DNA of 64,000 nt from Chlorokybus atmophyticus (GCA_009103225.1 RHPI01003642.1:455116-519115), one strand, 5' to 3'; shown: positions 26,837 to 58,340, counted from the first letter of the stretch. Notes: generated by a model not told the origin, from the sequence alone. A program made the numbers and translations.

Positions 26837-29800
26837 CTCTTGTACTCAAAATGCCAGTCGCGGCGTGTGGTCCATGACACCTCGCTCGAGGCGCTATTGG
26901 TTTCGCTTTGGGCACCCTGCACCAAGTACACAAGATGGTTATATGTGATGCCAAAACCCAGGATATATGAGGACATCCAGATTCTAATGGACAACACTGT
27001 TAACTCTCCTCTTACCGGAGTGTCCCAGTGCATGCCTCGATGCATGAGACTGCGCCTGTCTTTAACAAGCGCTACTGTTACTTTGTTGTCATGGGGATCA
27101 ATTCCCTCAAACCACTGGCCCTTGACCTGCCAGCAAGAAGGGATATTCATCAGCCATTTTCATACTACTAAAATTTACTATCATCACATCAAGCACACGC
27201 AAAAACGATTGCAACACAGCCACTTACCAGGTTGCAATCAAGGTAGGTTTGTTCTGCAAAGCGGGGCTTGTCTTTTCTTGGGGATTTCTTGGGGATTGCA
27301 AATCCTCCACTGTGCTGGACTTGGTTGCTCATGTATCACCTAGCTCTGAGCAGCTGGTGCTCCCGACCAGCTATCACCACAACATCAAAAGATTGCACCC
27401 TGCCATACCAATGGATCTTCTTGGTTGGGTCATGTGAGTCACGCCCACCGGTAAACACGCCACAGTCCACGGTGCGGAGTTTCTTCTCCATTTCCTCTGC
27501 TCTGAACTAACCGATGTCCTTATAGCGTGCTCTGAAGTATCGCTTGATGTACTTTGGAAAGATTGGACCGCTCAACAGCTCCATCTCATGCTTTGTAAGC
27601 TCCCTAGCAGGTCCACGCCAGTGATGCAGCTCATTCATATGCTCCATGTCCTTTGCCACGACATGTCCTTGTTTTTGAGCCCTTTCCCTTGCCATCCTGC
27701 GTTTGTTCACCTCCCGATTGAACTCTCTGTGTAGCAGCAACCCATAAAATAAATCATACTGTCTGCCCGTTGGACATTACGTTAAAAAATAGCAACTCCC
27801 AAAGCAACTTACTCTTTTAACAGCCTGTATTCATCGTCATTTTCAGCCAACCACCACTCGAGCTCCTGCCTTGTCTTACTATCTTTATCCCCAACCTCAA
27901 TACGGTGTCTCCGTCCGCAGAGCACATAGTCGTCATCATCTCGTTGCTTGCCCGATTGCAAACTGATGTCGGAGAAAAGTCGCTTCAAGGTGTCCATGTA
28001 AGTGTTCAGCATGAGCTGGATAAAGTATCTGCAGATGCAACTGGCACTTGAACAAGGCAAACAATGTGGAAAGTTTGCACGTAACTCTCAGTGGGCTCAC
28101 ACAAAACTTGCCTTTTGTAGATGCTTGCTTCCACATGCTGCCTTGCAATATCATGCGCTTCACCCACTGCATAAAGCGTTCATGTGCCCACTCCCAGTGG
28201 TCACGCGTCGGACCAAGCCACATGCACTGCTCTGGTAGATAGCCAAGGAGGTGCAGCATCATTGTGAGAGAAGTTCGCGGGAAGAACAGCTCCACTTCAA
28301 ACTGTGCCTCATGCATCAGCACCTGCACTAAGTAATAAGCTATGCATGCCATATGAGCTGGGCATGCAGAGTGAAGTGTTATTAAAGCCAACCTTCAATT
28401 CGTCGAGGTGTGACTGCTTTACTTCCAATGCAGTCAGCCTTTGATAGATGTCGCATAGTTTGAAGATGGTTCTCTTCTGATCTTCTCCAATGTCGTGTGC
28501 AGAGCGCAGCACGTACTGAAAAACGACCGACCATAAGTCGTGCTTGTCGTGCGATTTCATCGAGCCTGCATGCTCCATGTCAAAAGTTCCATGCATGGAG
28601 AACCATTGCTTTAGCGTAAACACAAAACATATAACGACTATCTCACCTAAATGCTTTGTGAAAGACTACAGTTTCGAGCCGAAAGTGCTTGAAACCCTCT
28701 TGCCGGAGAGCAATTGCTCAACCAGTCCTACATCTGTAATTGTCCATGGAGCCTGCGGTTTTACCTTGACTGCGACTTCCTTTCCATCCTTCATCTTCAT
28801 CTCTGTCTGCAGCACATAGGTTCAAGTCCTTGGTTAAATCCAACTATGGCACATGTCAACGAGGCCGACTATATACGTACCTCTAGCCAGAGTTTAGGCA
28901 TGCGGCCTTGCTGTTGCAGATCTTCTCGTGACTCGATGCTGTCGCGCAAGCCAGCTAGGAGATTTGCAAAGTTGGTTGCCAGGTTGGCAAAAATGTGCAT
29001 AGGGCCAACCACATGACCTTTGACAAATTTTTGTAACGGTAGCCAATATGGAAGGTCGTGGAAACAGCTCAGTCCAAGGATGCCGGAGGACTTTGAAGGA
29101 TGTCTCTTGGAGTGCAGTGGACGCTTGCTGTTGCGAGATGTCATAGCATACCTGATCACATGGCATCCATTGCTGACATACCTATGTTCTGCAACCGAAT
29201 GCGCAATCAACTGAGATTGCTCACCTGTACACGCTCTCTGCAGTCCGCATGGGTGGTGGAGGTCTGTGTTCTGGTTGCGGCCAATGCTCATCAACTCTGT
29301 AAGGATGGTCATCCGGTAGGTACCGGCGGTGGCCTTGATAGATCACCTTTTTGAGAAGTTCCACATGTTCTCCACTGCACTCGCGCTTTGAACAGCCAAA
29401 GATGGCTCCATGCGCCATCTGCAAGGCAGCTTTTGCCGGAGCTGCGCAACCAACATGATGTACTTCAGTAGCCACAACCATGGTTGCAAGGACAGTCCGA
29501 TATACAGTCAGACACTGATAACAGTAAGTGCAAACACCGACACCGAGGTCTTACATGCCGCCTCAGCGCCACGCCGACACACAAACAAACACAGGCAAAG
29601 AAACCGAGGTCTTACATGCCGCCTCAGCGCCACGAACACAAAAGCACAAGGCACGGACACCGAGGGCTTACATTGGACTGCCCCAGCCGCTCACCAACAC
29701 AATCATGCACACAGCCGTGCCTCATTTACCACTGAACTTGGCAATGTTACCGTGTATAATTCGCATAATCCCATCCTGACTTCGATTTGTGTGCGCCACC

Positions 29801-31320: not shown

Positions 31321-31484
31321 GACTGCCTACCGTAAATTAGGGTTTAGGACACATCCAATCCCGATTCAAAACAAGCCGGAAAGTCAATCCGGATATGCTC
31401 CACAATTTGCGTACGTGCTCCTTTTCTTCTTCCGTCCAGTGCATTAGCTTCTAGGGTTTGTGTGCCAGGCAGCGTGGCGCCAGC
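31321..31484. promoter_or_regulatory. Divergent promoter between TnpD and the methyltransferase, with telo-box motifs
   Basis: TTAGGGTTTAGG at ~31337 and CTAGGGTTT at ~31451. Confidence 0.55.
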
Positions 31485-33110
31485 ATGCGCGGCGTCAAAG
31501 TGTGTAGCTTCTGCAAAGCATACTTGGTTAGGAATGGCAACAACATACGTCTGCAACAGCATAAAGAGAAGTGCAAGCTGTACAGTGAGCAGTATGGCTT
31601 CTATGAAGCCTGCTGGCACCACAAGGCAAGGGGGGACAATGTGAGGCAATGCAGACTGCTGCCACAATGCATGAGGCTAGATTTCTTTTGGGAGGAGTGC
31701 ACTTGCCTTCAGTGCTCGCTTTCCAAGTTTGAGTGGGACGGCGAGCCCATGAATCACCTGCCTTGGGCACGGCCTGAAGCATATCACGATGGGCAGATGT
31801 GCAATGCGGTTCGACGTCAGCTCGTGCGCAACGGTCGCGGCAAGTCCACTGTAATCGAAGACGATGCCAACAACAGGGTGAGTTGAACTGTCCTTGCAAA
31901 CAGCAAAACAGCGTTTGCATGCATGACCAACTTACTCTTGAATGCCAAAGGGGAACGCGGTTGTCGACGATGTCGCGACACTGGCTGCTTGGCGGAAGGA
32001 GATTGTTGATGAGGGGCAGTCTTTGGTAGCAAGCCGCGTTGTGGTGTACTGGCCAGGAATGAGCTCCTGGTATGCAGGCCACATCATCACTTTTTATGCC
32101 AACAGGTATACTGCAGAGTATTTACATGCGCACGCTCATGCAAGCACCGGCTCAGGCAAACATGTGGCTCAGGAAAACATACCATCAAGTATGACGATTT
32201 CGTTGAGGACCCACGGCTGCACCACATCTTGATAAAAAACTGGAACATGGCAGCTGTGCGTGAGGGTTACGACGTAATGGTTCGTGTTGGTGGTCAAAGC
32301 TGTCTGAAACTGCAAGACTTGCCTGGTCGAGAGCTCGATCGGTGGCCCAAGCCCCCACCCCTTCTGATCACTCGCACACCAATAGACTCAAACGGAAGAC
32401 GTTGCAGGCCGCGCGCACTGGATCTCTTTTGCGGCGCTGGTGGTGTAGCCATGGGTCTGTACAGGGCAGGGTTTGATGTTGAGGGCATCAACAACCAGCC
32501 ACAACCGTCATACCCATTCAAGTTCTGCCAGATGGATGCAATGGACGCTGACCCGACAGCATACGATGCGGTGTGGGCAAGTCCTCCATGCCAAGCTCTA
32601 AGTGGGGCCATTCCCACTACACTGCGCTCTGCGTACGGCAATCGATGGGAGCACGTCAACCTGATTGACCCCATAAGAGCCAAGTTGCAGTTGAGCGGCA
32701 AGCCATGGGTGATAGAGAATGTCGCAGGCGCATCAGGACACATGAAAACTCACCTGAAGCTGTGTGGCACCATGTTCAAGTTGGATGTGTATCGTCATCG
32801 CATTTTCGAGACAAACCCTCCACTGCACTCAGACTTGAAATGCAACCACACTGGTTGTGCACTTGGAGAGCTGGCCACCCACCCGGAGCAGCGCCGGCAG
32901 TTGCTACCTGGGGAGAGGAAAATTTACCCGGTGTACGGCCAAGCATCATGCCGTGGCACGATTGTAGGGTGGTAGTTTGCCATGCAGGTGGAGTGGACGG
33001 ATGCGGAATCGGAAGTCAAGAATGCCATTCCACCAGCTTACTCTGAACATGTAGGCAGGCTGTTGCTGGAAGCAATAGGCTTTACTGTTGATTACCCTCC
33101 TTTTTACTGA
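31485..33110 (+). pseudogene. C5-cytosine DNA methyltransferase A: Cys/His-rich N-domain, Tudor-like domain, bacterial/phage-type catalytic domain; one premature TAG
   Basis: Three in-frame exons. Tudor-like LVASRVVVYWPGMSSWYAGHI..KHTIKYDD. Motifs I ALDLFCGAGG, IV WASPPCQ, VI IENV, VIII RHRIFE, X NAIPPAYSEHVG. TAG at 32973-32975 where the paralog has Gln; final TGA 33108-33110. Confidence 0.9.
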
Positions 33111-33170
33111 AAGGTAGAGTAGCTCTTGATTGCTGGCCACTTTGTTAGCCTGAACTCAAACCCAACAACA

Positions 33171-34330
33171 GAATGAGCGACCCAATAAAGTCAGCAAGAG
33201 GTCTTAATCACGAGGATGCCTCTGTTTGCCAGCACGGGAAAGACTGACCTGCTGGGCAGGGTCTCTTCCAGAGCACCTTCATGCCCTATTGCGCCGTCCG
33301 CCCACCCGAGATTAGACCTCCTGCGGGTTCACTGCGAACGCAGGGTATGGTCCAACCAAAGCTGACTCGCGAAAGTCATGAACCAGAGGCTCTGAGCATG
33401 TGCACAAAGTCTACAGTACGTGACTTGCGCGAGACGGCTCTGCAAGACCACATCCTGTGTTCGCGGTAAACCCGCAGGAGGTTTTGTGTCGGGTGGGTGG
33501 GCGGAGAAGGAGAACTTCTAGGTTGCTGTGCGCATGCCTTTGGTTGCGTGCAATCTTTGGACACATGCCCGGTTTCAGCGGTTGCCGGGGCCAGTACGAG
33601 GGCGTGCCAGTACGAGGGCGGCATGTCAACAGCAGCAAGAGAATTTCTCTCGGGTGGGTGGGGGGAGAAGGACTGCCAGCCTGAGTTGCCATATCACAAA
33701 CAGCAACCCAACCCCAGCGGCAGGTACAACCGCCGTCCATCCAACAGCCCTGGAGCAGATCGCGACCAACAAGGCGGTGCGTTCGCAGTGAACCCGCGTG
33801 CAGTCGGGATGATCCTAAGCATACAAGGACAGGCAGATGTGGGTGATTGCATTTTGCTGCAATTCTTCAACACACACAGACAGGCAGCTAAAGCTAACAC
33901 ACTGGTTGTATACTCTGCCAACATTACACACCCCATGTCTAAGGCTGAGTCACCATATCCGCTGACATGTACACCTCGGGATTGCACAAAGATCTTGGAA
34001 TTGTATTTCCTCTATCCTGTACAAAGACCACGAAATTGTCTTTCCTCTATCCTGTCATGTCAAGCTCCTGTCATGTCACCTGGAAGAACACCTCCACTTC
34101 TTGCTGGTTAGCAGCGAAAGCAGGTGGCACAGGCAAGAAGGGGGCAAGAAAGTGAGCAAGAAGGGGGCTTAATCACAGGGTGATGCCCCTACGCTCTGCA
34201 TACAAAGACAGAATGAGCAAGCAGAGGGCTTATTCATGAGGATGCCTCTGCATTCAGCATGAGCTCAGACCCGAATCGGGAATGAGAAAACAGAGGGCTA
34301 AATCTAGAAGATGCCTCTGTGTTCAGCTTG
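33171..34330. repeat. Dispersed ~65-70-bp degenerate repeat (gaatgagc...gaggatgcctctg): one copy at 33171, three tandem copies at 34150-34330
   Basis: Read by eye. Confidence 0.55.
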
Positions 34331-37300
34331 AATTAATATATACACTTACACATGAGGTTGGCCCTACGCTGCGAGAACGATAGATGTTCGTTCTTAACAA
34401 GCTCTTTGATTTTGCACAGGCATGGTGAGGTAGCAGAGGCTCCTGCAAACACAACAAGCAGCAGATAGGTGTCCATGCGTGTTCCAACCTGCAAAGCTGG
34501 TAGTCGTGAAGTGAACAACCTCGAGGTTGCTGTTACAGCTACCTCTGCTGCTGCGGCTGCGGCTGCTGCTGTGTTTCCTCCTGCTCCCGCCGCTGCTTCC
34601 ACTGCTCCTCTCCCTGCTGAGCCATTCGCTTTATCTGTTGGCGCTCCTCCTCCTTCTGCCGTTTCAGCTGCTTATGCAGCTGCTCCTGCTGCTCAAGGGT
34701 CTCCTGTGCAACTATCATCTCCTGCTCACGCTGATATGCAGCTTGATGTGCCAGCTTCTTCCCCTCCCGACGACTGGTGATTTGTTCCAGTCGTTCCAAT
34801 TTCTGCAACCTGCTTGGCCTTGCTTTGCCGAACTCAAACTTTGAACGATCTAGGAGGTGTGCTTGCTGTTTAACAAGCAAGGTCCGTTCATAATCCTTGG
34901 CAGCCGACACAAGCAAATCGAACTGATCAGCATTCCAATCTTGGTTGCAAGGACCCTTGGGCACGCCAATGCGCACTACTTCCTGAGTCCCTGGAGAAAC
35001 AGTTGTAGTTTCAGGGCCTTATGCACCAGCTCAACGCAGGTGTTTGCCACCCCGCACAATTGTGCAAACTGCGCGTGATATTCGTCCACGGTGCGCTCCC
35101 CCTGTTGCACACGATGCAGCTTCTGGAAAGCACCAGAAGGCGTGTTGTCTCTTTGCAAAGCAGCTCGCTGTTGGCGGCGTGACGGGCGGCGTCTGCGTGT
35201 CTCATCCTGCTTGGCCTTGGCCTTCGCCTCCTGCCTCTGCTTGGCCTCGGCCTCCTCCTGCCGCTGCTTGGCATTGTCCTCATCCAGCTTGGCCTTGGCC
35301 TCCGCCTCCTGCCGCTGCATGGCATTGTCCTCATCCAGCTTGGCCTTGGCCTCCGCCTCTTGCCGCTGCTTGGCATTGTCCTCATTTAGCTTGGCCTTGG
35401 CCTTGGCCTCCGCCTCCTACCGCTGCTTGGCCTTGGCAACAGCCTTCTGCCTCTGCTTGGCCTCGGCCTCCTCCTTCTGCTTGGCCTCGGCCTCCTGCTT
35501 CTTGTGTTGCTCCTTGGCATTGGCCTCATCTTGCTTAGCCTTGGCCTTGGCATCCACTGGTCTCGGCATCCATTTTTGTGCCCTACAGACCTTAACCTGT
35601 GTCTCAACTTTCTGCTTAGGGGCCGCCTCGGCTTCCGAATGGGCCTCCGCATCAGCTTGCTGCTTGGCCTCGGCATCAGCTTGCTGCTTGGGCTGGGGCT
35701 CGGCTTGCTGCTTGGGCTGGGGCTGGGGCTGCGGCTCGGGCTCGGGCTGGGCTTGCTGCTGGGGCTCGGGCTGGGGCTCGGGCTGGGGCTGGGGCTCGGG
35801 CTCGGCATCTGCAGGGTACATGCAGCGCAGGACTTCTGGTGGCATGTCGGTGCGCTGCCAAGAGAGTATACCATTTGCATCATTAACAGACATGTAATGC
35901 GCGCTGGGCTTGCTTGGATCAATGTTGCTAACGATTATATGGCTAGCCACATCGATAACATCCTCGCCAATCACCACTACAGGTTTGACGGAATGCTTCT
36001 CTCCCTTGGCATCCACTGTGTAGTACCTCCCGTCATCGCCTTCGATGAGGCCGCCCTTGTGCTCTGCTTCCCAGCAGTTCTGCTTCTCGTCGGCAACCTC
36101 AGCGAGCTGCACAGTACCGATGTGAATGCCAAGAGCGTGCGCCATGATCGCCACTTGCAGTTGATCGGCATAAACGCTCTCTTCAGCGATCAACCTCTGC
36201 AGAGCCTCTACAGCGTTGTCTTCATCTTGCTTAGTTTTGAGTTGCTTTTTGTTAAGTGCCCTGGTTACGCCATATTTCCTGGCCATCTTTTTGTAATCCT
36301 GGCCCATGTCACCACAGGCCCCGTAGTTGCGATACTCCAGAAACCAATAAAGGTTGACCTGCTCAGCACAGAGCTTCCGAAGCTTTTGCGCTTGCTCTCT
36401 TGTTGGCAGCTGTTTGCCATTATCCAGCACAATGCTTCGCCAGAAAAACCCGTTGTCCGCTGCATTTGCGCGTGTCAAGCACGCAGCGTTTACGCGAGGG
36501 CGCGACTGGGCAAGGCAGGCATAGAAGCAATTCCCATCTGCATAGCTATAGGCGTACCTATAGGCAACGAAAAGCCGAAGCCGGTGTTTATCATGCAACA
36601 GCCCAACCAGCTCTAACTCGCCCTCCGTTTCTGCTGGAGGTAGACCGTCTTCTGGTTCAACAGCAGAAGCAGAGGTACCGGCTTCAGGTCGAGGCCCTTT
36701 CTGCTTTTGTGCAGTCTGGGACTTGGGTGGGGCCTTAGCTTTGTGCTTGGCCTCCGCCTAAGCTTTCTGGTGGGCCTCCGCATCGGCTTGCTGCTTGGCC
36801 TCAGCATCCGCTTGCTGCTTGGCTTGATCCTCCGCTTGCTGCTTGGCCTCCGCGTCGGCTTGCTGCTTGGCTTGGGCCTCCACTTGCTGCTTGGCCTCCA
36901 CGTCGGCTTGCTGCTTGGCTTGGGCCTCCACTTGCTGCTTGGGCGCCTCTGCTTCGTAGTCAAGACTGTATTCCCCGATGTCGATGCCCATAGCAGCTGC
37001 CTCTGGATCACATAGCCTTAGCTCTTCCTCCACATACTGCCGTAGCTTGAGCCTCCATTCTCGATTGAGGGAAGCCAAGTCTGGTTTGCACAGCGCTTTC
37101 TTGATAAAGACCACCAGCTCACCCCATGACATGAGGTTCTTGCTCTTCGCCTTCGCTTTCCTCCAGTCAGAGAATTTCTTTCCCCACTTTCTCTTCGTTT
37201 TCTTCATGGATGTCATTATCGGTAACAACATCTTCAAGGCCAAAATGCCCGAGGTCCATACCCCTAGCAGCTGCCTCCGGATCACAAAGCCTGAGCTGGT

Positions 37301-37690
37301 CCACCACGAACTTCCGTAGGCAGATCTGCAAGTTCTTGTCGAGCTCAAGCAAGCGAGGATCTTCATTCAGGTTCTTCTGCATTACTTCAACCATGACATC
37401 CCAACTATATTCTGTGGACATTTCGCCTTCCCAGCCTTCTCCTCCTCCCTTAGTTTCCGCCAATTATTGAACCCCTCCAGCAACTGAGCCTTTGTGGTGT
37501 CAAAAAGGTCTGCAATAGACAATGTTATTGCAACAATGGTGGCAAACAACCGCAGTGAGCATGCGTTAGTATGGTCAGCTTGAACAGCGCTACATTACTT
37601 GATTTCTTGCAGGGTTTCTGCGAGACAGCTGCCTTCTTAGCAGGTTCCTTCTTGTGCGCTAGACCCTTGTGCTTCTTGTTTGTGTGCATG
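33540..37690 (-). pseudogene. Composite ORF: duplicated unknown N-domain, EAKQQA repeats, OTU-like peptidase, EP/coiled-coil repeats, retrotransposon gag-like domain, possible CCHC remnant
   Basis: YADGNCFYACLAQ..VYADQLQVAIMAHALGIHIG..AHYM (OTU C/H). FQKLHRVQQGERTVDEYHAQFAQL..LFLQGLR (gag-like). GHVSKDC at ~33550-33575. Stops at 36758, 35417, 34976 plus frameshifts. Linkage of the CCHC part is uncertain. Confidence 0.7.
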
Positions 37691-37950
37691 ACCAGCGTTA
37701 CCACATGTTAACAATAATCATGCTGAACATCGAATACATTACTTATTACCTGCAGGCTTAAACTGGCCGAGGGGAACGAGCTTTCGCTTGGACAAAATGA
37801 ACGACCTGAGGAAAGCCTCACAGCCAAAAACAAGCACACATAGTTGAGCAACATGAGCACTTGAGCATGCACACTCACACACGGCTGCCTATTTGAGCAT
37901 GCAGACAAGCCTGAGCATGCACACTTTAGCCTCAGCCACAATGAAAACTG

Positions 37951-38200
37951 CATGCTCAAATAAAACAGCTTGGAAACTGAGCAACAGGTGGTTTTACGCA
38001 CGAGGCCGCCCCTCTGGTTAGCATCAAGTGGTGGCTAACAAGAGTGCATGCTCAAATAAAACAGCTTGGCAACTGAGCAAGAGGTGGTCTTACGCACGAG
38101 GCCGCCCCTCTGGTTAGCATCAAGTGGTGGCTAACAAGAGTGCATGCTCAAATAAAACAGCTTGGAAACTGAGCAACAGGTGGTCTTACACACGAGGCCG
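37951..38200. repeat. 96-bp tandem repeat, 2.6 copies
   Basis: catgctcaaataaaacagcttgg... starts at 37951, 38047 and 38143; internal GTTAGC..GCTAAC stem. Lies between the divergent OTU/gag and TnpA genes. Confidence 0.93.
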
Positions 38201-38234
38201 TCGTTGTATACTCTATCTACAGGAGGGCATCATC

Positions 38235-45200: not shown

Positions 45201-45543
45201 AACGCCGCGATGCGTGATGCCTAGCTTTGCTGCTGTTGCAAGTCTATTTCATGTTGTTGCCGCTGTTCTTCATGTTATTTAAGATGGATTTCGTCTGCCA
45301 TGCGTAGTTGATGCTCGACGTGCTGTTGTTGTCGCTCTGTGCCTTGAGGATGTTGTCGACGCTCTTCAACTTGTTTTTACCGCAGCTCACATCTACGTGT
45401 AGCTTGCGCTTCTTGCCTTTGCTGTCTTTGTGAATTCGTCTGAGCTGCTCGCCAATCACGCGTTCTTTGTGCTGCTGCCACGGCCGCTCATTGCTTCGTA
45501 GCCGGCGACATTGCCCTCCTAGCACGTTGTAAAGCAGCTGCAC
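42278..45543 (-). pseudogene. Helitron Rep (HUH endonuclease) 5' half, degenerate
   Basis: CPHC zinc site; FHQVGPL; RRYNAPT; VLPSSVIGTPRHMTQLYQDAMAIVRKMGTPNLFITFTCNPNW; EWQKR..GLPHVHIL; EGRYVSSSEAAWR. The Helitron 5' TC end was not located. Confidence 0.9.
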
Positions 45544-45772
45544 GTGCTCGCCGTGCAGCCTCTCTGTCCGTATTGGAGGGGCCAGGATCGTCCATGTTTA
45601 CACGGCCCCACTCACAATAGGTTCCGTAATATATAAAGGGTATTGGATATCACAATCGCGTAAAACGTGAATCAATTGCACTCCAAGTAGACATGGATAC
45701 ATATATACCTACATCTATCAAGTACATCTCAAGTATAACAACCCTACCCATTTGTATCAACAATTTGCTCGT

Positions 45773-46358
45773 TCATCCCTCTCTTTTGGATGCAAGTTTC
45801 TACAATTGTCTCCAAAACGGCAATTGTTGAGCAAAGCCATCCAACACACCCTCATATGTTTCGATGCGTCTACCTCACACTCATTTGCCTAATTTGCCAA
45901 TTGCTGCGTATGCCAATATTCATCGAGCATCTCTTTCTTGATGACGACTGCAAAGCGGCTCTTTGTGTGGAATGTACGCAACAACCCATTCATGCAGTGC
46001 TCACTTGCGTGCTTGACCGATTTGACTGCTAACTCTCTGCGCATTACTCGGCAGTCATCCTCCAACTCCGTGACTCGCTTTGGTGAGAAATGCAGTTGAG
46101 ACTTGGCATGTGCGAGGGCAACATCCAATGCTTGGTAGCGTGCTTTGTACTGCTCTTATTTTGTGAACATGACGTCATAACTGCTTTCGTCAACTTTGCG
46201 GTGTACCTGCAACCGAACATGCGTAAGTCAACATGCCCTGTCTTTGCTCATCATTGCAATCAGCTCAGCGCGCATACCTTGCGTGCGGATGGGGGTGGTG
46301 GTGAGGGTGTATCCTCGTCACTGTCTGAACCGAAGATGTTTTCCAGAGTCACAGGCAT
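45773..46358 (-). pseudogene. Small two-exon gene with a C-terminal CCCH zinc finger, upstream of Helitron Rep (possible cargo)
   Basis: MPVTLENIFGSDSDED..RK|VHRK.. ends VCWMALLNNCRFGDNCRNLHPKEG* (C-x7-C-x5-C-x3-H); two premature stops. Confidence 0.6.
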
Positions 46359-46439
46359 CTGCAAGCAATGACATCAATATGAGAGAGAGAGATGCGCACA
46401 CAACTTCTCCGCCTACTACTTCTCAGGCACACGCATGCA

Positions 46440-46734
46440 CAGAAGACGGACTTCACACACACAACACATGCACACAACCACAACCACAACCACAACATGC
46501 ACTGACTTCAACACATGTCATCAACAACAGCAGCAACACACACATGTGTGGGCTGGAGGGGGGGCTGCGTCACTGCCTGGCTTAGCCGTTGGGCGGGCGC
46601 AGCTTGCAAGTACAAGTGGCATTGAAAGGCTAACTGGCTGGTGGGGGGGCACAACAACAACAACATCAACACACAGAACTCATCAACAACAACAACTACT
46701 CCACACAAAATAACAGCAGCAACACACACAACAA
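46440..46734. repeat. CA/CAA-rich low-complexity tract
   Basis: Read directly; ends exactly at the E2 terminus. Confidence 0.75.
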
Positions 46735-47200
46735 CAACGTCGCAAACTTTACACGCTGACTGACTAAGGACTGAGGGATTGACTGGTGCCTGAGCCTGCC
46801 TGAGCCTGCCTGTCACTGCCTGAAATATAACTTGTGGACTGTTGGGTTTGCCGTTGGCTTAAATGGACTGACGCAGATGGCCGCGGGCCGAAAGTGGTTG
46901 TCAGTGGCACTAACCGGCCGAGAGTTGTCAACCAGTTACCCTTTGGTCGATGTGCACAGACGGCCGTTAGCCGGTAGTTACGGACAGCAAGCAGCAATAG
47001 CCGGCAGTTTCTTTACCGTTACACTGCTGTTAATACGTGACCCTTGCCGTTTGACAACAGTTGGCAATTCTTGCCGTAAGCCAACACTAACATGCCATGC
47101 AGCTTGTACAAACCTTGTACTGATTGTTTGGTCTTGCACCTATAAGCCCACAATATATACAATGTACCGGCAGTGGTGAGAGTATGTCCACTTGCAACTG
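46735..47200 (+). mobile_element. E2 left terminus, related to the E1 ends
   Basis: caacgtcgcaaactttacacgctgactgactaaggactgagggattgactggtgcctgagcctgcctg aligns over ~70 bp with the reverse complement of the E1 right end (cattcgtcgcaaattttacacggtgaccgacaagggactgagggactgacgggtgcctgaccctgccta). No matching right end in the window. Confidence 0.75.
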
Positions 47201-48413: not shown

Positions 48414-48580
48414 GTATATATATATATATATATATATTTTATATACTATATACTATATATATACTATATATATACTATATATATATACTATATATATACT
48501 ATATACTATATACTATATACTATATATATGTACTATATATATACTATATATATATTATATATATATATATATATATATTT
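48414..48580. repeat. Compound (TA)n/(TATAC)n microsatellite
   Basis: Read directly. Confidence 0.93.
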
Positions 48581-48777
48581 ATCCAGAGACTCACCCTGGA
48601 CGTGCAATGGCTCGATCGTACTATAATAATGGTACGACGGAGCCAGTGAATGGCGGCCAAGTTTCCCGCCTCTGGCATGCAAGGTAGCGGTGGCGGCGGC
48701 GGCGGCTGGCTTGTGCGTGTTGCTGGATATGATGCAGGTTGCATTGGCAACACCTGTGTCGACGCTAGTAGTGAGAT

Positions 48778-51700
48778 ATGGGAGTCCTTTGTCTGTATTG
48801 CCACATGCGCTTCGCCACACGTAGCTCGGCCTACATGCACATTATTAGCAGCAGGGTGTGCAAGCAGATCAAGCTGTATGTCGGCCAGCGTCCATTACAG
48901 TACGATGCGGGTCATGTTGAACCGGGGAGTTCGATCCAGGATGCGCACATGCTTGATGTTGAAGGATTCTTCCAGGAGACACACGCACAGCAGCAACGGG
49001 AGGAGGAAGTGAACGAGGGCTTTCGATGTGTGCGTATGCCTGAGAAACCTGTGGCACGCTTACATGGAAGTGGAGGCGTCCCTTCGCACGCGTTGGAATC
49101 CAGGTGGTATGGCTTGGAGCATGCTCTTGCAGTGGCATTCGTGCAGTGCAACAATGGCCAAGGCCTTTCGGCCTCCGACATGGGGCGGATCATCAAGTGC
49201 ATCCGAAATGCACATTTCTTGACGGAAGAGCTCCAGTGGGAGACTGGTGTGCATGTGGCCAGCTACCTCCGGACAACAATTGCTTTCTCTCAGTCTGAGG
49301 TGTGCTCACGGTGTGCGGTGCATGTGCTTCAACCATCAGAGCCATGTCACATATGCACATGCGAGTGTGCTGCCGTATCAGAACTACGTGACGGCTGACC
49401 TGCGCAAGCCTGGAGACCCTGAGGATTATGACATCAGCGTCACATATATGCCGGCCAAGGTCTGTGAAATGCAGTACCTAATGCAATATCGATGCAGTAT
49501 CTATTCTGAGGCCAGCATAGTAAGTAATGCTCTTGGTCGGAGCAGGTATGGCTCGCGCGGTTGTATGGCAATCCACATGCCGCCAATGGCTTCAATCTCC
49601 AGTACAGTGGTGACGAGCACAGCTTTGGCCATCCTTCCACGAGCGATTGGTGGAAGGATGTGGAGGTGGATTTGAGGAGAGAGGTGGGGGAAGCGTCCTA
49701 CTTGGCGCCTGCCATTCTGTACAGTGACAAGACCACGCTGTACAGCGCGCGCAAGCGCTCTGGCTACCCTTTGATGGCATCGCTTGCCAACTACAGTTGG
49801 GACATGTATGCTAGCAACATGGGGGTTGTTATGATAGCGCTTCTGCCGATGGTTCACGCAGTGGCCGGGCATCCCACCTGGGCGCAGGGCAAGGAATCGT
49901 TCTCCATTCAAAAACGTGAGGTTTTTTATGACGCTTTGAATGTAGTGTTAGGGGATGTGAAGCGGGCGAGTTGGGAAGGTCTGCAGCTCATCGACCCGAA
50001 TGGCATCGAGCGTCGTGTGTTTCCCCCGCTTGCCAACTACATCAGCGATTTGCAGGTAGTGGGCATGAATGGTTGTACCTAGATGCAGCCTGCCAGCAAA
50101 CAGTGCATGGAGGATGTTGTCAGTAGAACATCTGAGTTTGTCGTGTTATAGGAGACTGCCACACTCGCACGCACTGTGTCCGGCAACCAAACACGACATC
50201 TTTGCGATGTTTGTCTCGTCACCAAATCAAATCTGTTGGAGATGGTTGAGGACCGGGAATTGAGAACCGAGGCCTTCTACACACCAAGAATACGTCAGCT
50301 GCGGGCGGACCTCCATAGCGGTGTTAGGAATGCACGCCAGGCAGCTAAGGCTTTCAAAGAGCAGCACTCCATGCATGTCGAGGAGGTAATGATCAAATTA
50401 TCGGCATTCGTGAGGATGAATGGCTTTCCGTAAAACCAGGCAATGTGGTTTGGCAACAGGATGCACTGTGGGATTGGCGACAGTCGCGGGTGCCGGGAGC
50501 TGACTGCTACTCTCGTCTTGCCCCTGACGCAATGCATGTGCTGGGAGGCATCATTGACCACCTGCTTGCTGCTGTGTACGACGCCGCGAAGGAACGAATA
50601 CGTCCATCCACGAGACAAATTCTGCAGGCCAGGCACGTCTTTGGTGTTGCTTTTGTGTTGAACACAAAAGCCAACGACACGTGCTCACAAGCAGATGTGC
50701 ACAGGCTGAATGCATGCAAGGCGACTCTGCGGGTTTCGCACTTTAAGGCACCCACAAGCAGTAGATTTCTTCCTGTCCAACCACTCCTTTCAGGTGGTGG
50801 AGAAAGTGGCGGTGCTGCAGCTGCTGCCGGTCCTCGCAGACGGTTTGCTGCTCGACGGTGAGGGCAACGATTTCTTCACCATTGCTGCCGCATCGCTTGC
50901 CCAGTGGAACAAGAAGTTGCTCAAGTTGCTCAAGGCCCATGAATACACAAGAGAGACCCTGACCACAGCCGACAACGAGCTGGCTGCCTTCAAAGCTGCA
51001 GTGTTGCATCCGCTACTGTCGTCATATTCTGCACAGAAGTCAGGTTGGATGATCGAGATGCATCAGCTCACTCATGTTGGGCCGGCAATTGTCAGCAGTG
51101 GACACCCAGATTGGTTCAGCGCCAACCGCATGGAGCAGACGCACGCCCAAAATATCATATGGTGGGCGCGTGGTGGCAACCGGGACTACCAGGCACGTAT
51201 CCTGAAGGCTTGGAGCTGTGCGGGATATGTGAGAGAGGATGGCATGGTCGTGGTTCCCGAGATGCGCTCGGTCATGGCGCAGGCGCGGCAGCAGTGCTGC
51301 AATGTCATGGAGAAGACGGACAAGTTGTTACGGATGGATGTGCTGACAAGGAGGGAGTCCAGCCCGTACTGGAGCGGATATGCGCGTAGCCGCCAAGTCG
51401 CCTTGAAGACTCCATTTGCCGACAAGTTGCCTGCCACCTTGGACAACTGGTTGAGGAGGGAACAACTGGAGTTCGCCGACGGGTGGCGTGCTGTTCGCGT
51501 GGTGAACGGAGGCGCAGCGGTGTACATGACATCAGGAGTCAGCATGGCGCGCGCAACTGGGATGTTCCATGGGCCTTGGTTCTCTACACTTGAGTTGGAA
51601 GGTGATGAGGACGGTGTGAACGTGACGTGGTGGGCTCAGGCACTCTTTTTTCTGTGCGTGGTGGTGTGGGGTGGTAGCGGCGAGCGCGTGTGGAAGGAGG

Positions 51701-51915
51701 TCGTGTTTATCCGCTGGTACACGAAGCTGGATGTGACGAGCGACACAAAGTGCATCGCTCTGGATTGGGAAAAGCGTCGAGGCGGTCCACATCTCGATGT
51801 CGTGACTCTGGAGCAAGTAAAAGACATTGTCCAGCTGCTCCCCATGTTTGACAAGGACAGCGCCCGTGTACAAAAGGGCAAGTATTGGGTGAACGTTCAA
51901 TGCACTTCAACGTGA
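48778..51915 (+). CDS. Plavaka-family (CMC-related) transposase, multi-exon, apparently intact or nearly so
   Basis: N-terminal CLYC..H..C zinc finger; DWWKDV..APAILYSDKTTL..YPLMASLAN; GLQLIDPNGIERRVFPPLANYISDLQE; CDVC; PDAMH; MHQLTH..FSANRMEQTH; C-terminal VFIRWY. One junction at ~50630-50720 needs a GC donor or has a 4-bp frameshift. Confidence 0.82.
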
Positions 51916-52118
51916 CACATGTACTTGTCTCACTACTCTGAGTTTGGAGCATTTCAGTCAGTTAGGCATTGCTAATCGTATGCTAAGACTTTTGCATGTG
52001 GACGTGTACAATACCGGGCAGCTGGCACTGCACAACTGTCACCACAATTGAATGTGCCATGCAACATTCAACAATCAATCCGCCGTGTGGCATTAAGCAT
52101 CAATACAGTGCACCACAT

Positions 52119-53841
52119 CTAAGCCTCATAGTTCCATGACACAGGAGGGTAGTCACAGCGCATATCCATTGTTTCAAGCATGAGACGCCCTATGCACTCC
52201 GCCATTGCGGGAGGAACTGCATTCGCTATGGAAACGGCCGAGGTCATCCATGGCACTCCCAGCGCTGTTTGCCACGCAGCAATGCCGCCCCTGGTGCTTG
52301 GAAGGCCATAGACCGGGTACATTTGCTGTGGCGCGTTTGATGTCACGATTGTCTTCTTCGCGCTAGCGGACAGGTGCGGCGATAGCAGTCCAACTGCCTT
52401 GCCCGCGTGCGAGCAGTGTGCTGGTGGGGTAGCTACGACTGGCTGTGTCTCAAACAGACGGTGTCGGAAAGTTGATAGGCCAAACATCGTGCCACAAAGG
52501 GACTGATTGGGTCTGAATGAGGAAGCTGCTCCTGGCACATTCTCAATCACAAACTTGACCTGACTTGCAAGCAGCAGACGTCGGATGAGCGGTATCATAT
52601 CCTGGTGTCTCCAGGATGTGTCATGTGCCGCCCGTTGAGGTGCCGGGATAGCACCTGAATAGGCCTGGCATGGTGGACTGGCCTAGATGAGCTCGTACTC
52701 GCTCAGCTCTCCTGCACTCAGGGTGCATACATCGCGGTGTATGAAGGGCAGCGGGTACTCAAAGGAGGGACTTATGTCCATCCCGGTCACGTCAAAGCCT
52801 GCGTGGTATAGACCGCCACTGGCACCGCCACCGCCGCAGAATAACTCGAGTGCCCTTGGTCTGCGTGTGCGTCCAAGCTTGTTGTCAAATGGCGTGTGTG
52901 TGGTCAAGGCTGGCCGTGGTGCTGGCCAGGGACTAACAATGATGCCGTTCGGGCTTACTTTGCGACTGACGTTCTCCCCTCCAGCGCGCAGAACATGGCG
53001 TGCCCCGTCAACTGATGTGAACGCGAATGCGTTGTGCCCTTTGAAGTTGATGGTTTGTGGTCGATCACCGTCATCGAATACTATATGGTGCTGCCCTGCA
53101 AAGACATTTTTCATTGCACCATGCATATATGATGCGTCCTCAATCTCGCACGCCAGGAAGCGATGCTGACTTGACGCTTGCTTGAATGATTCCACAACGC
53201 CCGCATACCATTCCCCATCCAGCGGCCAATGCACCACGACACTCATACCGATCAGCTGCTCGCATCCCAACTTAATTGCATTCCGCAGCCGATTCAGTGC
53301 GCTGTCCAATGGTCGATGGTCTGCCTCCTCTACAGCGGCCAGGGGATGGAACCGCCCACGCCCACACCGTGGAAGACTGCTCTGAATGCGACAACAGCTT
53401 CGGCATGCATGAAATAAGCATACGCCCAACATAACATGCAGTGATACGTCGCGGTCCACTCAGCCGAATTACCTCCACAGCATCCACCACCTGTCCACTA
53501 ACCACATGTCCCGGTGTTGTCCATGTGAAGAAGCGCATGGGTTCCCCTCGCCACTCGAAGCATGAGCGCGATTCGCACACGCACTGCACGCAATGGAAAA
53601 ACTCGGGTTCCTTGCACAGCACGTGGCCGAGGCGGCAGCAAAACACGTCGACATTGTGTGTGGTGTGATGCCAGCAATCAGCACTAACACCGTGGCACAC
53701 CGTCTGCACTCGCTGGCATTCGGTCAAGTGTGCTCGCATCTGCTGCCTACGGCCATTGGCACATACGTACGCATTGCATTGTGGGCACACCAAGCATGGT
53801 CTCCTAGGTGAGGGGGATTCAACTGCTGCCGCCGACATCAT
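52119..53841 (-). pseudogene. C5-cytosine DNA methyltransferase B, same Cys/His-Tudor-MTase architecture as copy A; one premature TAG
   Basis: CPQC..H..C..CWHH..CVQCVC..FEWRGEPM; Tudor-like LIGMSVVVHWPLDGEWYAGVV..HHIVFDDG; ALELFCGGGG, *ASPPCQ (TGG>TAG at 52683-52685), IENV, LCGTMF, RHRLFE, NAVPPAMAECIG. Confidence 0.9.
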
Positions 53842-53879
53842 GCAAAATAGGAATCGGCACGGCTGCCCACAAACTGAGC

Positions 53880-54065
53880 GAGACTTTAGGGTATGGGCAT
53901 CAATTTAGGGTTGCCAGCTTACGAACCCTAAATGGGTCAAACTTCAAGTGAAGCACGACTGTACCTTATACGCTATTGCAGTACCATGCATGGTACTACA
54001 TCAACATGAATGGTACTCTATCTGTTAATGGTACTACAGTACAAGGATACTCGCATACTACCACG
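53880..54065 (-). promoter_or_regulatory. Upstream region of methyltransferase B: telo-box-like motifs plus ATGGTAC cluster
   Basis: TTTAGGGT twice and AACCCTAAA once (53884-53932); four ATGGTAC/GTACCAT copies (53980-54036). Confidence 0.5.
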
Positions 54066-54324
54066 ATCGTAGAGTAATATTGTGCTGTCATGCTATGGAA
54101 CCCAGAGCGCTGTCCGAGTTTGTTGCTGTCAACCACGCTCTAAACCAGCGAGGTATGCAAGCCATGCACTGACTCATGCGCCGGGCAGTCATTATACACA
54201 TGTACAGCCAATGCTTCTGACAACAGCAGATCTTTGGTGCACCATGCACCATGCTGCGACTATACATGTACCTACATGGTTCACAGGAAGCCAACACAAA
54301 ACTACAATACATGCACAATTGGCA

Positions 54325-55335
54325 TCAAGGCGGGGGCCAAATCACCGCCGACACGTTGGCGTCTTGCATCAGGCGTGGCGACCAAAACGGGTGAGGTTGC
54401 TTGCAGAATGGACACGCTTGTAGATTCTTTGATTTATTTGCCACAGTCTTCTGATGTGCTATGATGCAGACATGGCACATCGCTTTCTTGCAACAGGGCG
54501 TCTCCCCATCCGCTGGGGGGGGTGGCTCTTCAATGCGACAGATCAGCACACATGGTGCACGCGGGTGTGCAAGCTGCCTCTGCCACCAAACTCTGTTATC
54601 GCGTTGCAGGCGTAGCGACTCCCATCTGAATGGCGCAGCAAAACGCTCCACTGCCTGCTTGATCACCTGTTGCCCATCTGCCGCCATACACCACCTGCTG
54701 GTCTTGGTAGTCTCGTCCAGCATGCGTTCATCCAGGCCCTCGACATAGCTGTCGTCACTCGTGTACTCCCCCGCATCATCATTTTCTTCGAGCTTCCACA
54801 GAATCAGCTCGACGTGCCGTATGACATACAGCCCCTGCCAGCCAAAGCATGCCAAGTACAGCTCGAATGGTTTTACTTGCCACCCAGTATGTTTGCTCAG
54901 GTCGTGGCACACATCTCGACCCGCATTAGTCGACATCGACAGGTACATCTGCTGCAGCAGGTCGAAGTTCTGCTCCGCAGATAGCTCTTGCACATTGCCG
55001 GGTTGCTGCGGCAGCAACAACACCATTATATCAAGGACGGCGAGGGGCAACAACGTACTACGGATGGCCATATCGTGTATGGGTTCCAACCACGGCCAAT
55101 CCCCAGAGGTCTGTTTAGACCGCACTTTCCGCGTTTGCTCCCACTTATTGCATACTTTCGTCACCCACCTCGAGGCATGCCGCATGCGGTGATGCAGCGC
55201 GTCTTGGGCGTATTGTAGGGTGATCAACTCCTTTGCACTACGAGTTAGCCCCTCAAAGCGTCTGCGCGTCGGTGCTTTGAGCTTAGGCAGCTCGTGCCGC
55301 ACCGGCTGTCTCTCTGGACGATGCTGAGCAGCCAC
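54325..55335 (-). CDS. 336-aa single-exon protein with a C-terminal RING-like Cys cluster
   Basis: PCVLIC..TPCCKKAMCHVCI..ACPFCKQP; open reading frame; N-terminal part unrecognised. Confidence 0.6.
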   Translation of the reverse strand: MAAQHRPERQPVRHELPKLKAPTRRRFEGLTRSAKELITLQYAQDALHHRMRHASRWVTKVCNKWEQTRKVRSKQTSGDWPWLEPIHDMAIRSTLLPLAVLDIMVLLLPQQPGNVQELSAEQNFDLLQQMYLSMSTNAGRDVCHDLSKHTGWQVKPFELYLACFGWQGLYVIRHVELILWKLEENDDAGEYTSDDSYVEGLDERMLDETTKTSRWCMAADGQQVIKQAVERFAAPFRWESLRLQRDNRVWWQRQLAHPRAPCVLICRIEEPPPPADGETPCCKKAMCHVCIIAHQKTVANKSKNLQACPFCKQPHPFWSPRLMQDANVSAVIWPPP

Positions 55336-55393
55336 TTGACGCTGTAAACCCGCCTGTGCCTACTCAGGACACACAGTCAGCCCCAGTGAGGCT

Positions 55394-58340
55394 TCAAGGC
55401 GCTGTGCTTCTTCTATTGTTGTAACGATGCCACACCTTTCCTTTTTTTGGCCTGTCAGCGTCCTTTGTTCCAATAACCTTCTTCTTTTTTTTTGGGTCAC
55501 CATGCACATCCTGGCAGGCGCTCTCCGTGGCACTGTCACTCAGAGGAGGTAAGGCGTTATCTTCTTGCTCTACAGCCTTGCGCTTGTTGGTTGCCTCCTG
55601 TTCCTCCACGACCTCATGTTGCTTCATGAGGTCGAGCATGAAGCCTTTGTCTTTCAGCGCAGCTTTCAAGACACCTCGATTAATCTCTTTACCAACAAGA
55701 CAGGCTGGGATCAATGTGGCAAGCTTAGAGGGAGAGGGCGAGCTACAGCTGCTTCTTGATGGAGATGCCTCCGGATGGTCAGAGTGGGGTGGCAAGTGAG
55801 TCTCCGCGGCAGGAAGGGAGGGTGCTGAATTGGGATTGCGAGCATGTGGCTGTGGTTGAGGGGAGGCAGGATGTGCAGAACACTCGGCTACTTCTTGCCC
55901 AGCACACGAAGGCGAGGCCTGAGGCGTTGGCGCAGCACTCTGGGTCACAGCCGGTGGTAGCGGGGAATTGGCAACGCCATTCCGCCACTCTCCGATTAGG
56001 TGTGTTACCTCCGGTGGCAATTCATGCATAGGCCACGACCACTGTTCGGTGCTTGTAGGCTTGAAGAGCCAAAAGTGTGCTTCTGGCTCATCAGGAGCAG
56101 TGTTGCCCACCACCAGGACTGAGTTGGGGGCTTCTTTATTTCCAACCCAAACTGCGCTGCCGGGCCGTGGCACCCACTCCCCATGCTCGCGCCGAACGGT
56201 CACGCAGCCAATCAACAAGCCCAGCTTGTTGGCAAACATGGTCATCTGCAGGTGCTTGACGTACACATCTTTTCTCCGCACAATCTGTTGCACCTTGGCC
56301 ATGGCTAGGTCAATGTTGCAATTGACATCAGCCAACATGGTCGCAGGCAGTTTGTCGTAATACTGCGCCATCTCTCCCGTGGCACCAGTGGCTCTGCAGA
56401 AGTCTAGGATTCTGCTCGCCACGCCTGCATCAACAGCCTTGGCGGTGATTTTGCGGAGAGTGTGCCCCCTGCCATCGTCGTCCATGGTGTCCAGCATGGC
56501 CCAAAATCTGCTCGAGCTGGGGCACTTGTGATCATCCATGACACTTTGCGCTATGGATGGCCTTGCGCGAAATGCACAATGGTAGAAGCAATTACCATCC
56601 GCTGGCGCATTGAAGTGGTCCATTGAGGCGAGCTGGCCACCTAGCATGACTGATGGCCGTATGCGTGTTGCGGCCAGCTCCTCTGATGACTCATTGGCAG
56701 GTGGTGACCCCTGCTGCATGCGCATACAGCACTCAAATGGTGTGTCCAATTGTGGACGGCAAGAGTCACAGTGACTGATAAAGTACCTTAGTTTCGGGCA
56801 GACTGCAGGCTTCAACTTGCAGCGGGTGGGGTAAGGTAGGTGCAGAAGCCACATCGGTTGTTGCATTGTGCTGTGGTCTCGCCGGAAGCGGCAAGAAGGA
56901 TTGTTGCCCCGCAATTACCGGTGCTGCTCGTGGAGGAGATGGCAGTGCATGAAGGACTGGTGCCGCGGAAGATGGTTGCGCTCTGGCTGCGAGGGGAGCA
57001 AGAGCGGCAGGTGAGACCACTTGTGCATGCAGCAAGGGGGGCTGTATACAGGACCCAGGATAAGATGGCTCACAATGTTGCAAAGGACGAATATAAGCTT
57101 ATGCAGTGCCTGCCGCATTGTTACCAAGGCACGAGCATAAAAGACAGCGACTTACCTCAATGGCCCGTGGGCTGCATGGAGCAGGGGAAGCCATGGGGGC
57201 TGACAAGGTGATATTGGGTGCACTCTCCCCGCCACCCTCGATCGCAGACTCGTCACGGAGCTCGTGAGCCATGGGCACATCATGCGCCACTGCCCCAATG
57301 GACATGTCGGGATTCAACAAGCCAACATGCATGTTAAACTGATGCCGCATTGCCGCCGCGCCCATCAGCAAGTGGGATTGAAGGACCAGTTGATTGGATT
57401 GAATCCAGGCTTGCATAGGAGCTCCAATATGACCTAGTGCACTGTGGTGCTGTCAAACAATCACATGTGGGTTAGCTGCATGCTTGCGACACTGCAAATG
57501 CAGCAGTCAACTGCGTCACACCGTCAACAGTTGGTTGCTTCGAACAGTCACCTGCGGCATTGCTGGTTGATGCACGAATGATTGCATGGACTGCGTCATC
57601 TGTGGTTGATGCACTATTGGTTGAATGCCGGACGAATGGCCACGCGTTTCTGTGCTCAAACCCAGCCTACTTCGTTCGGCACGCGCACGCGATTTTGCAC
57701 GCTCACGCACAACCTAGCATGCAAAGGTAGGCATGCATTGGAGGTGCATGCAGTCAACATGCACAGCGAGATTGACAACAACATACCGCCGCCCAGCTCT
57801 GTCTATCTGCTCTGGCTTCCGCAATGTCGGCTTGACTGTAGGGTGGGTATGGGTGAATAGTGGAGGCCTGCAGCCATGCTACATATATCACATGGACTGC
57901 GCTAAAAAACAAATTGCTCTTGCAAGGAAATGCATGTGACTGTTGAGCGTACCTCTGCATTCCTTTGTGCTTGTTCCCACAGCCGCAATTGGTCCCGCAT
58001 GGTTCTGACAAGGGGCTTCAAGGACTGCAGCTCCTGATCCACTCCTTGTTGCAGAAAGCGAGCCACCAAGCAGCTCTCTGTGTGAAGATGGTCTTTAATG
58101 GCTTGCCTGCTGGTTTGTCCAATGTTGGTGATGCATGTTGGACAGCCCCATTGCTGACGCCTGCCATGATCCATCACGTGGCGACCGGTAGTAGCTGGCT
58201 TCGCTGCTTGAACTCTTACGACCACAACTTCTCGCAAGATGTGCCACGCCGCCGCCGCTGCCGCCGCCTCCTCCGACTCCTGGTCGAACCCAAGCCCATC
58301 AAGCCTGACATTCGACCCGTCATCGACCTTGTGCCCCTGC
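55394..58340 (-). CDS. OTU-like peptidase gene (multi-exon); upstream exons include a CPTC..H..C zinc-finger-like segment
   Basis: APADGNCFYHCAFRARP..DVYVKHLQMTMFANKLGLLIGCV..GNTAPDEPEAHFW in ORF 55394-56914. Joining of the upstream exons (57.0-58.3 kb) is inferred, not resolved. Confidence 0.68.

Follow-up and report, generated by a model that had tools for sequence, protein, structure and literature searches.

Tudor-linked C5 methyltransferase and probable OTU peptidase genes as likely passengers of two EnSpm-superfamily transposon lineages in Chlorokybus atmophyticus

How did genes for a C5 DNA methyltransferase and a putative OTU peptidase come to stand twice, each time beside a different transposase, in one stretch of the Chlorokybus atmophyticus genome? 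The stretch analyzed here, the window, comprises 64,000 nucleotides (GCA_009103225.1, RHPI01003642.1:455116-519115), and positions below are counted from its first nucleotide. The first pair, methyltransferase (MTase) A and OTU A, lies with a TnpD-type transposase in a block designated E1, and the second, MTase B and OTU B, lies next to a Plavaka transposase in an element designated E2 (Table 1). We propose, with a probability of roughly 0.65, that a zinc finger-Tudor-C5-methyltransferase and an OTU protein are passengers of two related lineages of the EnSpm superfamily, one TnpD-type (E1) and one Plavaka-type (E2), of which the copies seen here are dead. That the genes are transposon passengers and not single-copy host genes is well supported: those of E1 lie inside a bounded insertion, and those of E2 recur together with the 3′ end of the transposase in contigs from public reads.

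E1 is one exact insertion that splits the RepHel gene of a Helitron and is accompanied by a 2-bp duplication (AA). On its right, 42277-42666 aligns to residues 746-824 of Helraiser (E value 6e-9); on its left, where PIF1 helicase domains occupy the minus strand at 16139-18072, 18399-18674 matches residues 860-931 of Helraiser (7lcc; E 3e-6). As these are consecutive parts of Helraiser, the block is flanked directly by both halves of a single RepHel gene, which supply an exact empty site for comparison. No stop interrupts the Helitron frame up to 42274, and deletion of one flanking AA brings it back into register at 18704. Both halves are alike in composition, with a GC content of 0.49 and an observed/expected CpG ratio of about 1.0, the ratio in E1 being 0.59-0.70. 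Besides the TnpD-type transposase, MTase A and OTU A, the block holds a PHD/C5HCH part, an Ulp1-like part and, nested in it, a Copia retrotransposon. Since the insertion is single and exactly bounded, MTase A, OTU A and the TnpD gene moved as one unit.

The transposase of E1 shows the domain order expected of EnSpm/CACTA TnpD proteins, with Transposase_21 (E 2.9e-5, 29224-29550) upstream of DUF4218 (E 1e-5, 27939-28394) on the minus strand. The original prediction had named both TnpD and TnpA in this element; TnpD is borne out, whereas Pfam scans for TnpA (Transposase_24) found none. Nor does E1 have the CACTA/CAC termini and 3-bp duplication expected of EnSpm; it ends in the 9-mer CGTCGCAAA and is flanked by the AA duplication. 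No Plavaka match was obtained for its transposase, neither transposase matches the Pfam family of the other, and the two show no similarity by blastp. Downstream of the E1 transposase follow the PHD/C5HCH fingers, which also match zf-HC5HC2H (E 2.5e-6) and C5HCH (E 7e-4), and the Ulp1-like part.

Between these two parts of the transposase gene sits the Copia element, which entered E1 later. Its long terminal repeats (LTRs; 21335-21763 and 25830-26258) are 97% identical, and it looks apparently intact, with gag, integrase and reverse transcriptase in long open reading frames (ORFs).

Plavaka and EnSpm transposases are both placed in the EnSpm/CACTA superfamily (bioRxiv 10.1101/2025.02.11.637652; PMC12730594). 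In the E2 gene the Plavaka domain (PF18759) scores 73.8 bits against a cut-off of 26.3 (E 1.9e-20), in agreement with the family first assigned to this region, and the C-terminal ORF of 401 aa has an MHQLTH..G..E-type motif. A partner for the left end of E2 was sought up to position 64000 with the 9-mer, an 8-mer allowing one mismatch, a 23-mer allowing three mismatches and blastn at word size 7, and none was found. E2 thus lacks a right terminus in the window, and the end that had been proposed for it at 58340 is unsupported. Right-end candidates at 57491, 60507, 62646 and 63438 were dropped for lack of similarity past the 8-mer. To the right of the E2 genes, a PIF/Harbinger transposase fragment either interrupts the element or lies outside it.

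The region 51900-57100, with the E2 genes, is fully tiled by contigs of three public DNA runs (two organism codes), which contribute 101, 259 and 10 contig pieces at identities of 90 to over 99%. Individual pieces bridge MTase B and the neighboring 344-codon ORF as well as this ORF and OTU B, and contigs extend past the left edge, where 27 of the 30 bases before 51901 match at the end of the Plavaka ORF. The order of transposase 3′ end, MTase, ORF and OTU therefore characterizes a multicopy family. Co-occurrence inside bounded elements, which according to the original prediction would support it, holds for the Helitron-bounded E1; for E2 the linkage holds in multicopy contigs, but the right end is missing from the window.

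At position 52684 every DNA run has a C, which turns the stop codon of MTase B into TGG (Trp), so that the break in MTase B is private to the window copy. Differences from window to contigs number 40 T>C and 21 A>G against 11 C>T and 9 G>A. In the window copy of 51900-57100, C-to-T and G-to-A changes are strongly over-represented (61 against 20), and 13 of the 18 listed difference sites lie in CG or CHG context. This pattern suggests deamination of methylated cytosines in the window copy.

Six-frame self-comparison of the window recovered the MTase and OTU pairs where they had been predicted, and blastp and motif alignment showed both to be homologous, with collinear motifs. Identity between the two MTases is 34% in the N-terminal Cys/His-rich piece (31455-31883 in A, 53275-53904 in B; E 3e-14), 38% in the middle piece with the Tudor-like region and motif I (E 3e-17) and 43-44% in the catalytic piece (E 1e-30 and 2e-9). 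The stop-free pieces of MTase A at 32013-32972 and 32976-33107 pair with 52686-53459 and 52122-52682 of MTase B, all of them collinear. Every catalytic motif looked for is kept in both copies: motifs I (FCGxGG), IV (SPPCQ, with the catalytic Cys), VI (ENV), VIII (RHRxFE) and AIPPAY follow in the same order and also align with database MTases, and both copies have a C-terminal target-recognition/motif X region. The Tudor part of MTase B matches a solved Tudor domain (PDB 7de9_A, E 1.4e-4). An uninterrupted reading frame is found in neither copy of the window; MTase A has an in-frame stop at 32973-32975 and a frame change within the Tudor region, and MTase B a nonsense codon at 52683-52685, immediately ahead of motif IV. 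Both copies are pseudogenes.

OTU A (35420-36757), whose gene carries one stop (36758-36760), is 25% identical to OTU B over 297 aa (blastp, E 1.6e-13) and 31% identical over the core. Common to both are the motifs ADGNCFYxC..RP, VY..LQ..A..LG..IG.V and P..P.AH[YF], and the Cys box ADGNCFY and the His box AH[YF] are invariant between the copies, with the usual order and spacing. The gene regions of E1 and E2 have no similarity at the DNA level and therefore the gene pairs are not a recent duplication. Strong divergence without recent local duplication, as originally claimed, is thus upheld, with 34-44% identity for the MTases and 25-31% for the OTU proteins.

The arrangement of the genes is not conserved. 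In E1, MTase (plus strand) and OTU (minus strand) are convergent and separated by a 2.3-kb spacer with palindromes and one ORF, while in E2 they stand in tandem on the minus strand, OTU upstream, with the 344-codon ORF in between. Their placement relative to the transposase differs as well, being head-to-head in E1 and tail-to-tail in E2. As order, orientation and intervening genes differ, MTase and OTU are not a fixed collinear cassette, and the heritable module of the original prediction is confirmed as a set of passengers in which each pair appears to be of one origin, but not as a fixed unit. No other gene common to E1 and E2 was found by blastp at E values up to 1. The ORF between OTU B and MTase B had been labeled RING-like; a Pfam scan assigned it to no family.

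Further repeats were seen within E1. A palindrome cluster at 33275-33800, directly downstream of MTase A, has 78-nt arms (33275-33352 and 33446-33523) and a perfect 20-nt inverted repeat (33323-33342 and 33778-33797). Between OTU A and the right terminal inverted repeat (TIR), a 96-bp unit is repeated three times in tandem (37944-38231; 95% and 77% identity).

The ends of the elements tie the two transposons together. In the 64 kb there are exactly four copies of the 9-mer CGTCGCAAA, where 0.5 are expected, and all four are located at element ends. Two of them open the arms of the TIR pair of E1, whose 350-bp inverted repeats are 72-80% identical. On its outer right, the E1 block ends in a different kind of sequence: inverted, 42199-42273 is 85% identical over 75 bp to the left end of E2 (46738-46812), and both open with CGTCGCAAA. 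Beyond their first 9-13 bases, the 350-bp TIRs of E1 are unlike these Plavaka-family ends. The termini contain two CpGs. We also considered 42199-46812 as a 4.6-kb TIR-bounded element and rejected it because CGTCGCAAA lies at the inner edges (42273 and 46738); the Plavaka-family ends at 42273 (minus strand) and 46738 (plus strand) point away from each other, and the 5′ half of the Helitron lies between them.

The simplest reading of the E1 block is a composite, hybrid-end transposition in which one E1-type end was paired with a neighboring Plavaka-type end bearing the same 9-mer. Because they have this 9-mer in common and the E1 block ends on a Plavaka-family-type end, the two transposons appear to be related or cross-compatible and not independent. 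Of the two different transposons originally described, the difference in transposase family stands but their independence does not. Target duplications measure 2-3 bp for Plavaka and 3 bp for EnSpm (PMC12730594), and the 2 bp at E1 fit Plavaka better than EnSpm.

The same ends could also mean that only one lineage is present, in which case E1 would be a Plavaka-type cargo element moved in trans by a Plavaka transposase, and its TnpD-PHD-Ulp1 gene would come from a nested CACTA element with decayed ends. The identical 9-mer at E1 and E2 termini, the Plavaka-family-type outer right end and a duplication that is Plavaka-like instead of the 3 bp of EnSpm (PMC12730594) would all be explained in this way. 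Yet E1 owns a 350-bp TIR pair that differs from the Plavaka-family ends after the first 9-13 bases, and a search for nested TIRs or inverted repeats around the TnpD-Ulp1 stretch found none. Moreover, its cargo is just 25-44% identical to that of E2, and E1 is therefore not a recent Plavaka derivative. We consider this one-lineage explanation unlikely, and two related lineages remain our preferred reading.

Table 1. Positions of the transposons, their ends and their genes in the window.
Feature	Position	Strand	Evidence or remark
Helitron RepHel, 3′ half (PIF1 helicase part)	16139-18706	-	PIF1 E 1.7e-18, Pif1_2B E 9e-15
E1 block, 23,567-bp insertion	18707-42273	.	CGTCGCAAA termini facing inward, Helitron halves on both sides
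E1 left TIR	18707-19054	+	72% identity over 353 bp to 42088-41761, E 9e-46
Ulp1/C48-like peptidase fragment	20387-20644	-	Peptidase_C48 E 0.026, weak; HWSLLLV-type motif in translation
Copia LTR retrotransposon nested in E1	21335-26258	-	RVT_2, gag and rve domains
NSD-type PHD + C5HCH zinc fingers	26389-26775	- (same strand as E1 transposase)	PHD_NSD E 9.5e-6
E1 transposase core, TnpD type (EnSpm/CACTA), in pieces	27939-29550	-	Pfam
MTase A: Cys/His domain, Tudor-like region, small C5 DNA methyltransferase; pseudogene	31455-33107	+	DNA_methylase PF00145 E 8e-5
OTU A gene, low-complexity repeats at both ends	35420-37366, core 35798-36580	-	blastp to OTU B
E1's own right TIR, 185 bp inside the inserted block	41761-42088	-	pairs with E1 left TIR
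Plavaka-family-type right end, outer right terminus of E1 block	42089-42273	-	similarity to E2 left end
Helitron RepHel, 5′ half, upper bound approximate	42274-45600	-	Helitron_like_N E 1.4e-43 at 43158-43604
E2 left terminus (Plavaka-family TIR)	46738-46812	+	CGTCGCAAA start, 75-bp similarity
E2 Plavaka transposase gene, several frames	48775-51912	+	Plavaka PF18759 at 49528-50079
MTase B: Cys/His domain, Tudor, C5 methyltransferase	52122-53904	-	homology to MTase A, motifs
344-aa ORF between OTU B and MTase B	54328-55359	-	no Pfam match
OTU B, open 506-codon ORF	55397-56914, core 55880-56632	-	blastp to OTU A
PIF/Harbinger transposase fragment, right of E2 genes	60202-60678	-	DDE_Tnp_4 E 1.8e-15

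The window as a whole is a dense transposon nest in a repeat-rich genome. The only probable host gene seen in it is an exon of Dus (dihydrouridine synthase; 4329-4952, plus strand, E 1.4e-14). Two MITE-like hairpin inverted repeats, at 63340-63446 (34 nt, 94%) and 63599-63749 (66 nt, 71%), are located beside an AT/AC microsatellite.

A database search with the MTase catalytic domain returned 7400 homologs, the best of which are 45-55% identical C5 MTases of ~210 aa from phages and metagenomes. The genomic contexts of two longer matches (P0001 and P0006), which consist of phage or prokaryotic genes, revealed no transposon relatives of the MTase. The closest database relative of the transposon MTases, P0002, is 54% identical and has a lineage-specific insertion and a C-terminal DYPP tail in common with MTase A and B. 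It is encoded on a compact 1.65-kb contig (Logan contig L001:2-1568 of SRR24908243; precomputed MBD match, PF01429), 65 bp behind a 2OG-Fe(II)-oxygenase-like ORF, and may represent another reader/writer pairing in a virus-like context. In a maximum likelihood tree of 72 sequences, MTase A and B form one clade (support 98/81) that is sister to P0002. This clade, together with the same N-terminal Cys/His and Tudor parts, supports a single origin of the two MTases.

For both OTU copies, peptidase identity is probable, not proven. The Pfam OTU profile (PF02338) gives a weak match to OTU A only (E 0.12), and the top matches of a PDB profile search are nairovirus OTU domains, again weak (E 0.13). 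Independent support comes from language-model features: among the 100 nearest named clusters in the ESM Atlas, 79 for OTU B and 81 for OTU A are OTU (best scores 0.92 and 0.93, with 173-187 features in common), and the top clusters come from Nucleocytoviricota and haptophytes. No relatives were found in 5.8 billion proteins, IMG/VR and JGI metagenomes, or by a profile search of 1.84 billion representatives; all four collections are silent on eukaryotic genomes they omit.

The MTase and OTU genes might instead be remnants of an integrated giant-virus-like element, or host genes, that came to lie near transposases through repeat nesting only. The phage- or virus-like character of the closest MTase relatives, the 2OG-oxygenase-like ORF beside P0002 on its compact contig, the viral and haptophyte OTU clusters and the dense nesting of transposons in the region speak for this scenario. 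It does not account for MTase A, OTU A and a transposase lying together in one exactly bounded insertion, nor for E2 genes that are multicopy and keep their linkage to the 3′ end of the transposase, and Pfam scans of the window detected no other viral hallmark genes. We therefore hold it to be quite improbable, while a viral origin of the genes before their capture is compatible with the passenger reading. Most improbable of all is that the OTU genes belong to Helitrons, in which OTU is recurrent upstream of RepHel (PMC11417382) and of which a local minus-strand copy has OTU B on its strand and upstream of it, since OTU A lies 5.2-16.7 kb inside both ends of the block that interrupts this Helitron, the left end of E2, the Plavaka gene and MTase B separate OTU B from RepHel, and the multicopy contigs tie OTU B to the 344-aa ORF and MTase B.

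Several observations weigh against two passenger-carrying lineages. E2 has no right end in the window, so that the cargo status of its genes rests on the read contigs, and the OTU assignment comes without a significant sequence match in any database searched; an AlphaFold2 model of the OTU core, made from a two-sequence alignment, is unusable (pLDDT 38.8). The Transposase_21 and DUF4218 matches of E1 fall below the Pfam gathering scores, and the branches of MTase A and B in the tree are long (1.1 and 1.5). As to the insertion, a 2-bp duplication would arise by chance in 1 of 16 cases and a restored frame in 1 of 3, and the extra outer end of 185 bp may belong to the E1 family itself instead of having been captured. 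Finally, a single run guessed to be RNA covers OTU B, with one contig of 647 nt in its 3′ half, and this is not counted as expression.

If two lineages are indeed involved, each gene pair would descend from one ancestral gene, in lineages that parted long ago (25-44% protein identity) and whose gene order has been reshuffled. Both would use ends opening with CGTCGCAAA, and a single transposition into the Helitron would have paired a left end of E1 type with a right end of Plavaka-family type, leaving the 2-bp duplication. The copies in the window would since have died, as nonsense codons in both MTases, the nested Copia and the excess of C-to-T decay suggest. This history may have involved a transfer of cargo between lineages, a swap of transposases or common inheritance.

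In intact copies, the Tudor domain might direct the small viral/phage-type methyltransferase to marked chromatin, and the element would thereby write 5-methylcytosine (5mC) on or near itself. The OTU protein might strip ubiquitin or a ubiquitin-like modifier from chromatin or element proteins, and both activities could tune the chromatin state of the element and the timing of its activity. Such reader-guided self-methylation and ubiquitin editing are inferred from domain content. Likewise, the self-methylation or counter-silencing by the module that the original prediction envisaged is pure inference, and both MTase copies in the window are pseudogenes. A further possibility, which we put forward tentatively, is that the Tudor-C5-MTase and OTU form a functional accessory set under selection, and that TnpD-type and Plavaka-type elements have exchanged it by virtue of interchangeable CGTCGCAAA ends, of which the hybrid-ended insertion would be an example.

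Our literature search turned up no report of EnSpm or Plavaka elements that combine a Tudor-linked C5 methyltransferase with an OTU peptidase. The novelty asserted in the original prediction thus applies to the exact cargo combination, but not to the concept, as transposons carrying chromatin genes are already known (PMC12730594; bioRxiv 10.1101/2025.02.11.637652; PMC3627910). Among the closest are the giant Plavaka elements of the red alga Bostrychia moritziana with their genes PAG1-3; these elements measure 17-19 kb and are mostly degenerate, and their accessory genes have been found in Mutator, Zisupton and Fanzor elements as well (bioRxiv 10.1101/2025.02.11.637652). As in our case, these are large EnSpm-superfamily elements in an alga with several chromatin- or DNA-modifying accessory genes. 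The red-algal cargo consists, however, of an N6-adenine methylase-SET fusion and a ParB-2OG oxygenase fusion instead of a Tudor-linked C5 MTase and OTU, the host lineage is another, and here the 9-mer at the termini is shared with a second carrier, a TnpD-type EnSpm element. In fungi, TET/JBP genes are carried by Plavaka, KDZ, hAT7, IS3EU, PHISTA and EnSpm elements (PMC12730594). There, too, one DNA-methylation enzyme gene is found in varied cut-and-paste lineages including Plavaka and EnSpm, but the fungal cargo is a 5mC oxidase, an eraser, in contrast to the 5mC writer and peptidase described here, and the element termini are TGT..ACA, CATCA..TGATG or CAC..GTG and not CGTCGCAAA.

C5 MTases encoded by mobile elements themselves have been reported from DNMT-bearing retrotransposons in Symbiodinium and in Klebsormidium, a streptophyte alga (PMC5890265). 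Those are LINE, DIRS and LTR retrotransposons with eukaryotic Dnmt3-type or related domains, whereas in E1 and E2 a DNA transposon carries an MTase of phage/virus type, ~200 aa long and fused to Tudor. Mariner-1_OLpv of an algal giant virus encodes a transposase, an EcoRII-like nuclease and a C5 DNA methylase (PMC3627910), and is likewise a cut-and-paste transposon with a prokaryotic/viral-type C5 MTase. In contrast to E1 and E2, it is a Tc/mariner element in a virus genome with a restriction-modification-like pair, lacks a histone reader and OTU, and is not a resident family of a eukaryotic genome. OTU and Ulp1 are recurrent domains of Helitrons, with OTU upstream of RepHel (PMC11417382), which likewise makes an OTU-type cysteine peptidase a passenger of eukaryotic DNA transposons; Helitrons are rolling-circle elements, whereas here OTU occurs in elements with DDE transposases and beside a DNA methyltransferase. 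Orphan virus-like DNMTs are dispersed across eukaryotic genomes (PMC12344493).

Cytosine methylation is normally a weapon of the host against transposons. If the tentative exchange scenario is correct, these would be the first DNA transposons of the plant lineage that write their own 5mC, aim it with a histone reader and edit ubiquitin marks. A writer kept across a deep split into two transposase lineages would benefit the element, possibly by self-limitation, by reshaping nearby chromatin or by coupling transposition to replication via hemimethylated, CpG-containing ends. The hybrid-ended insertion also offers a concrete way to ask which ends are moved by which transposase. Alongside the examples from red algae and fungi, the elements of C. 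atmophyticus would mark chromatin enzymes as tools that giant EnSpm/Plavaka elements repeatedly acquire and exchange.

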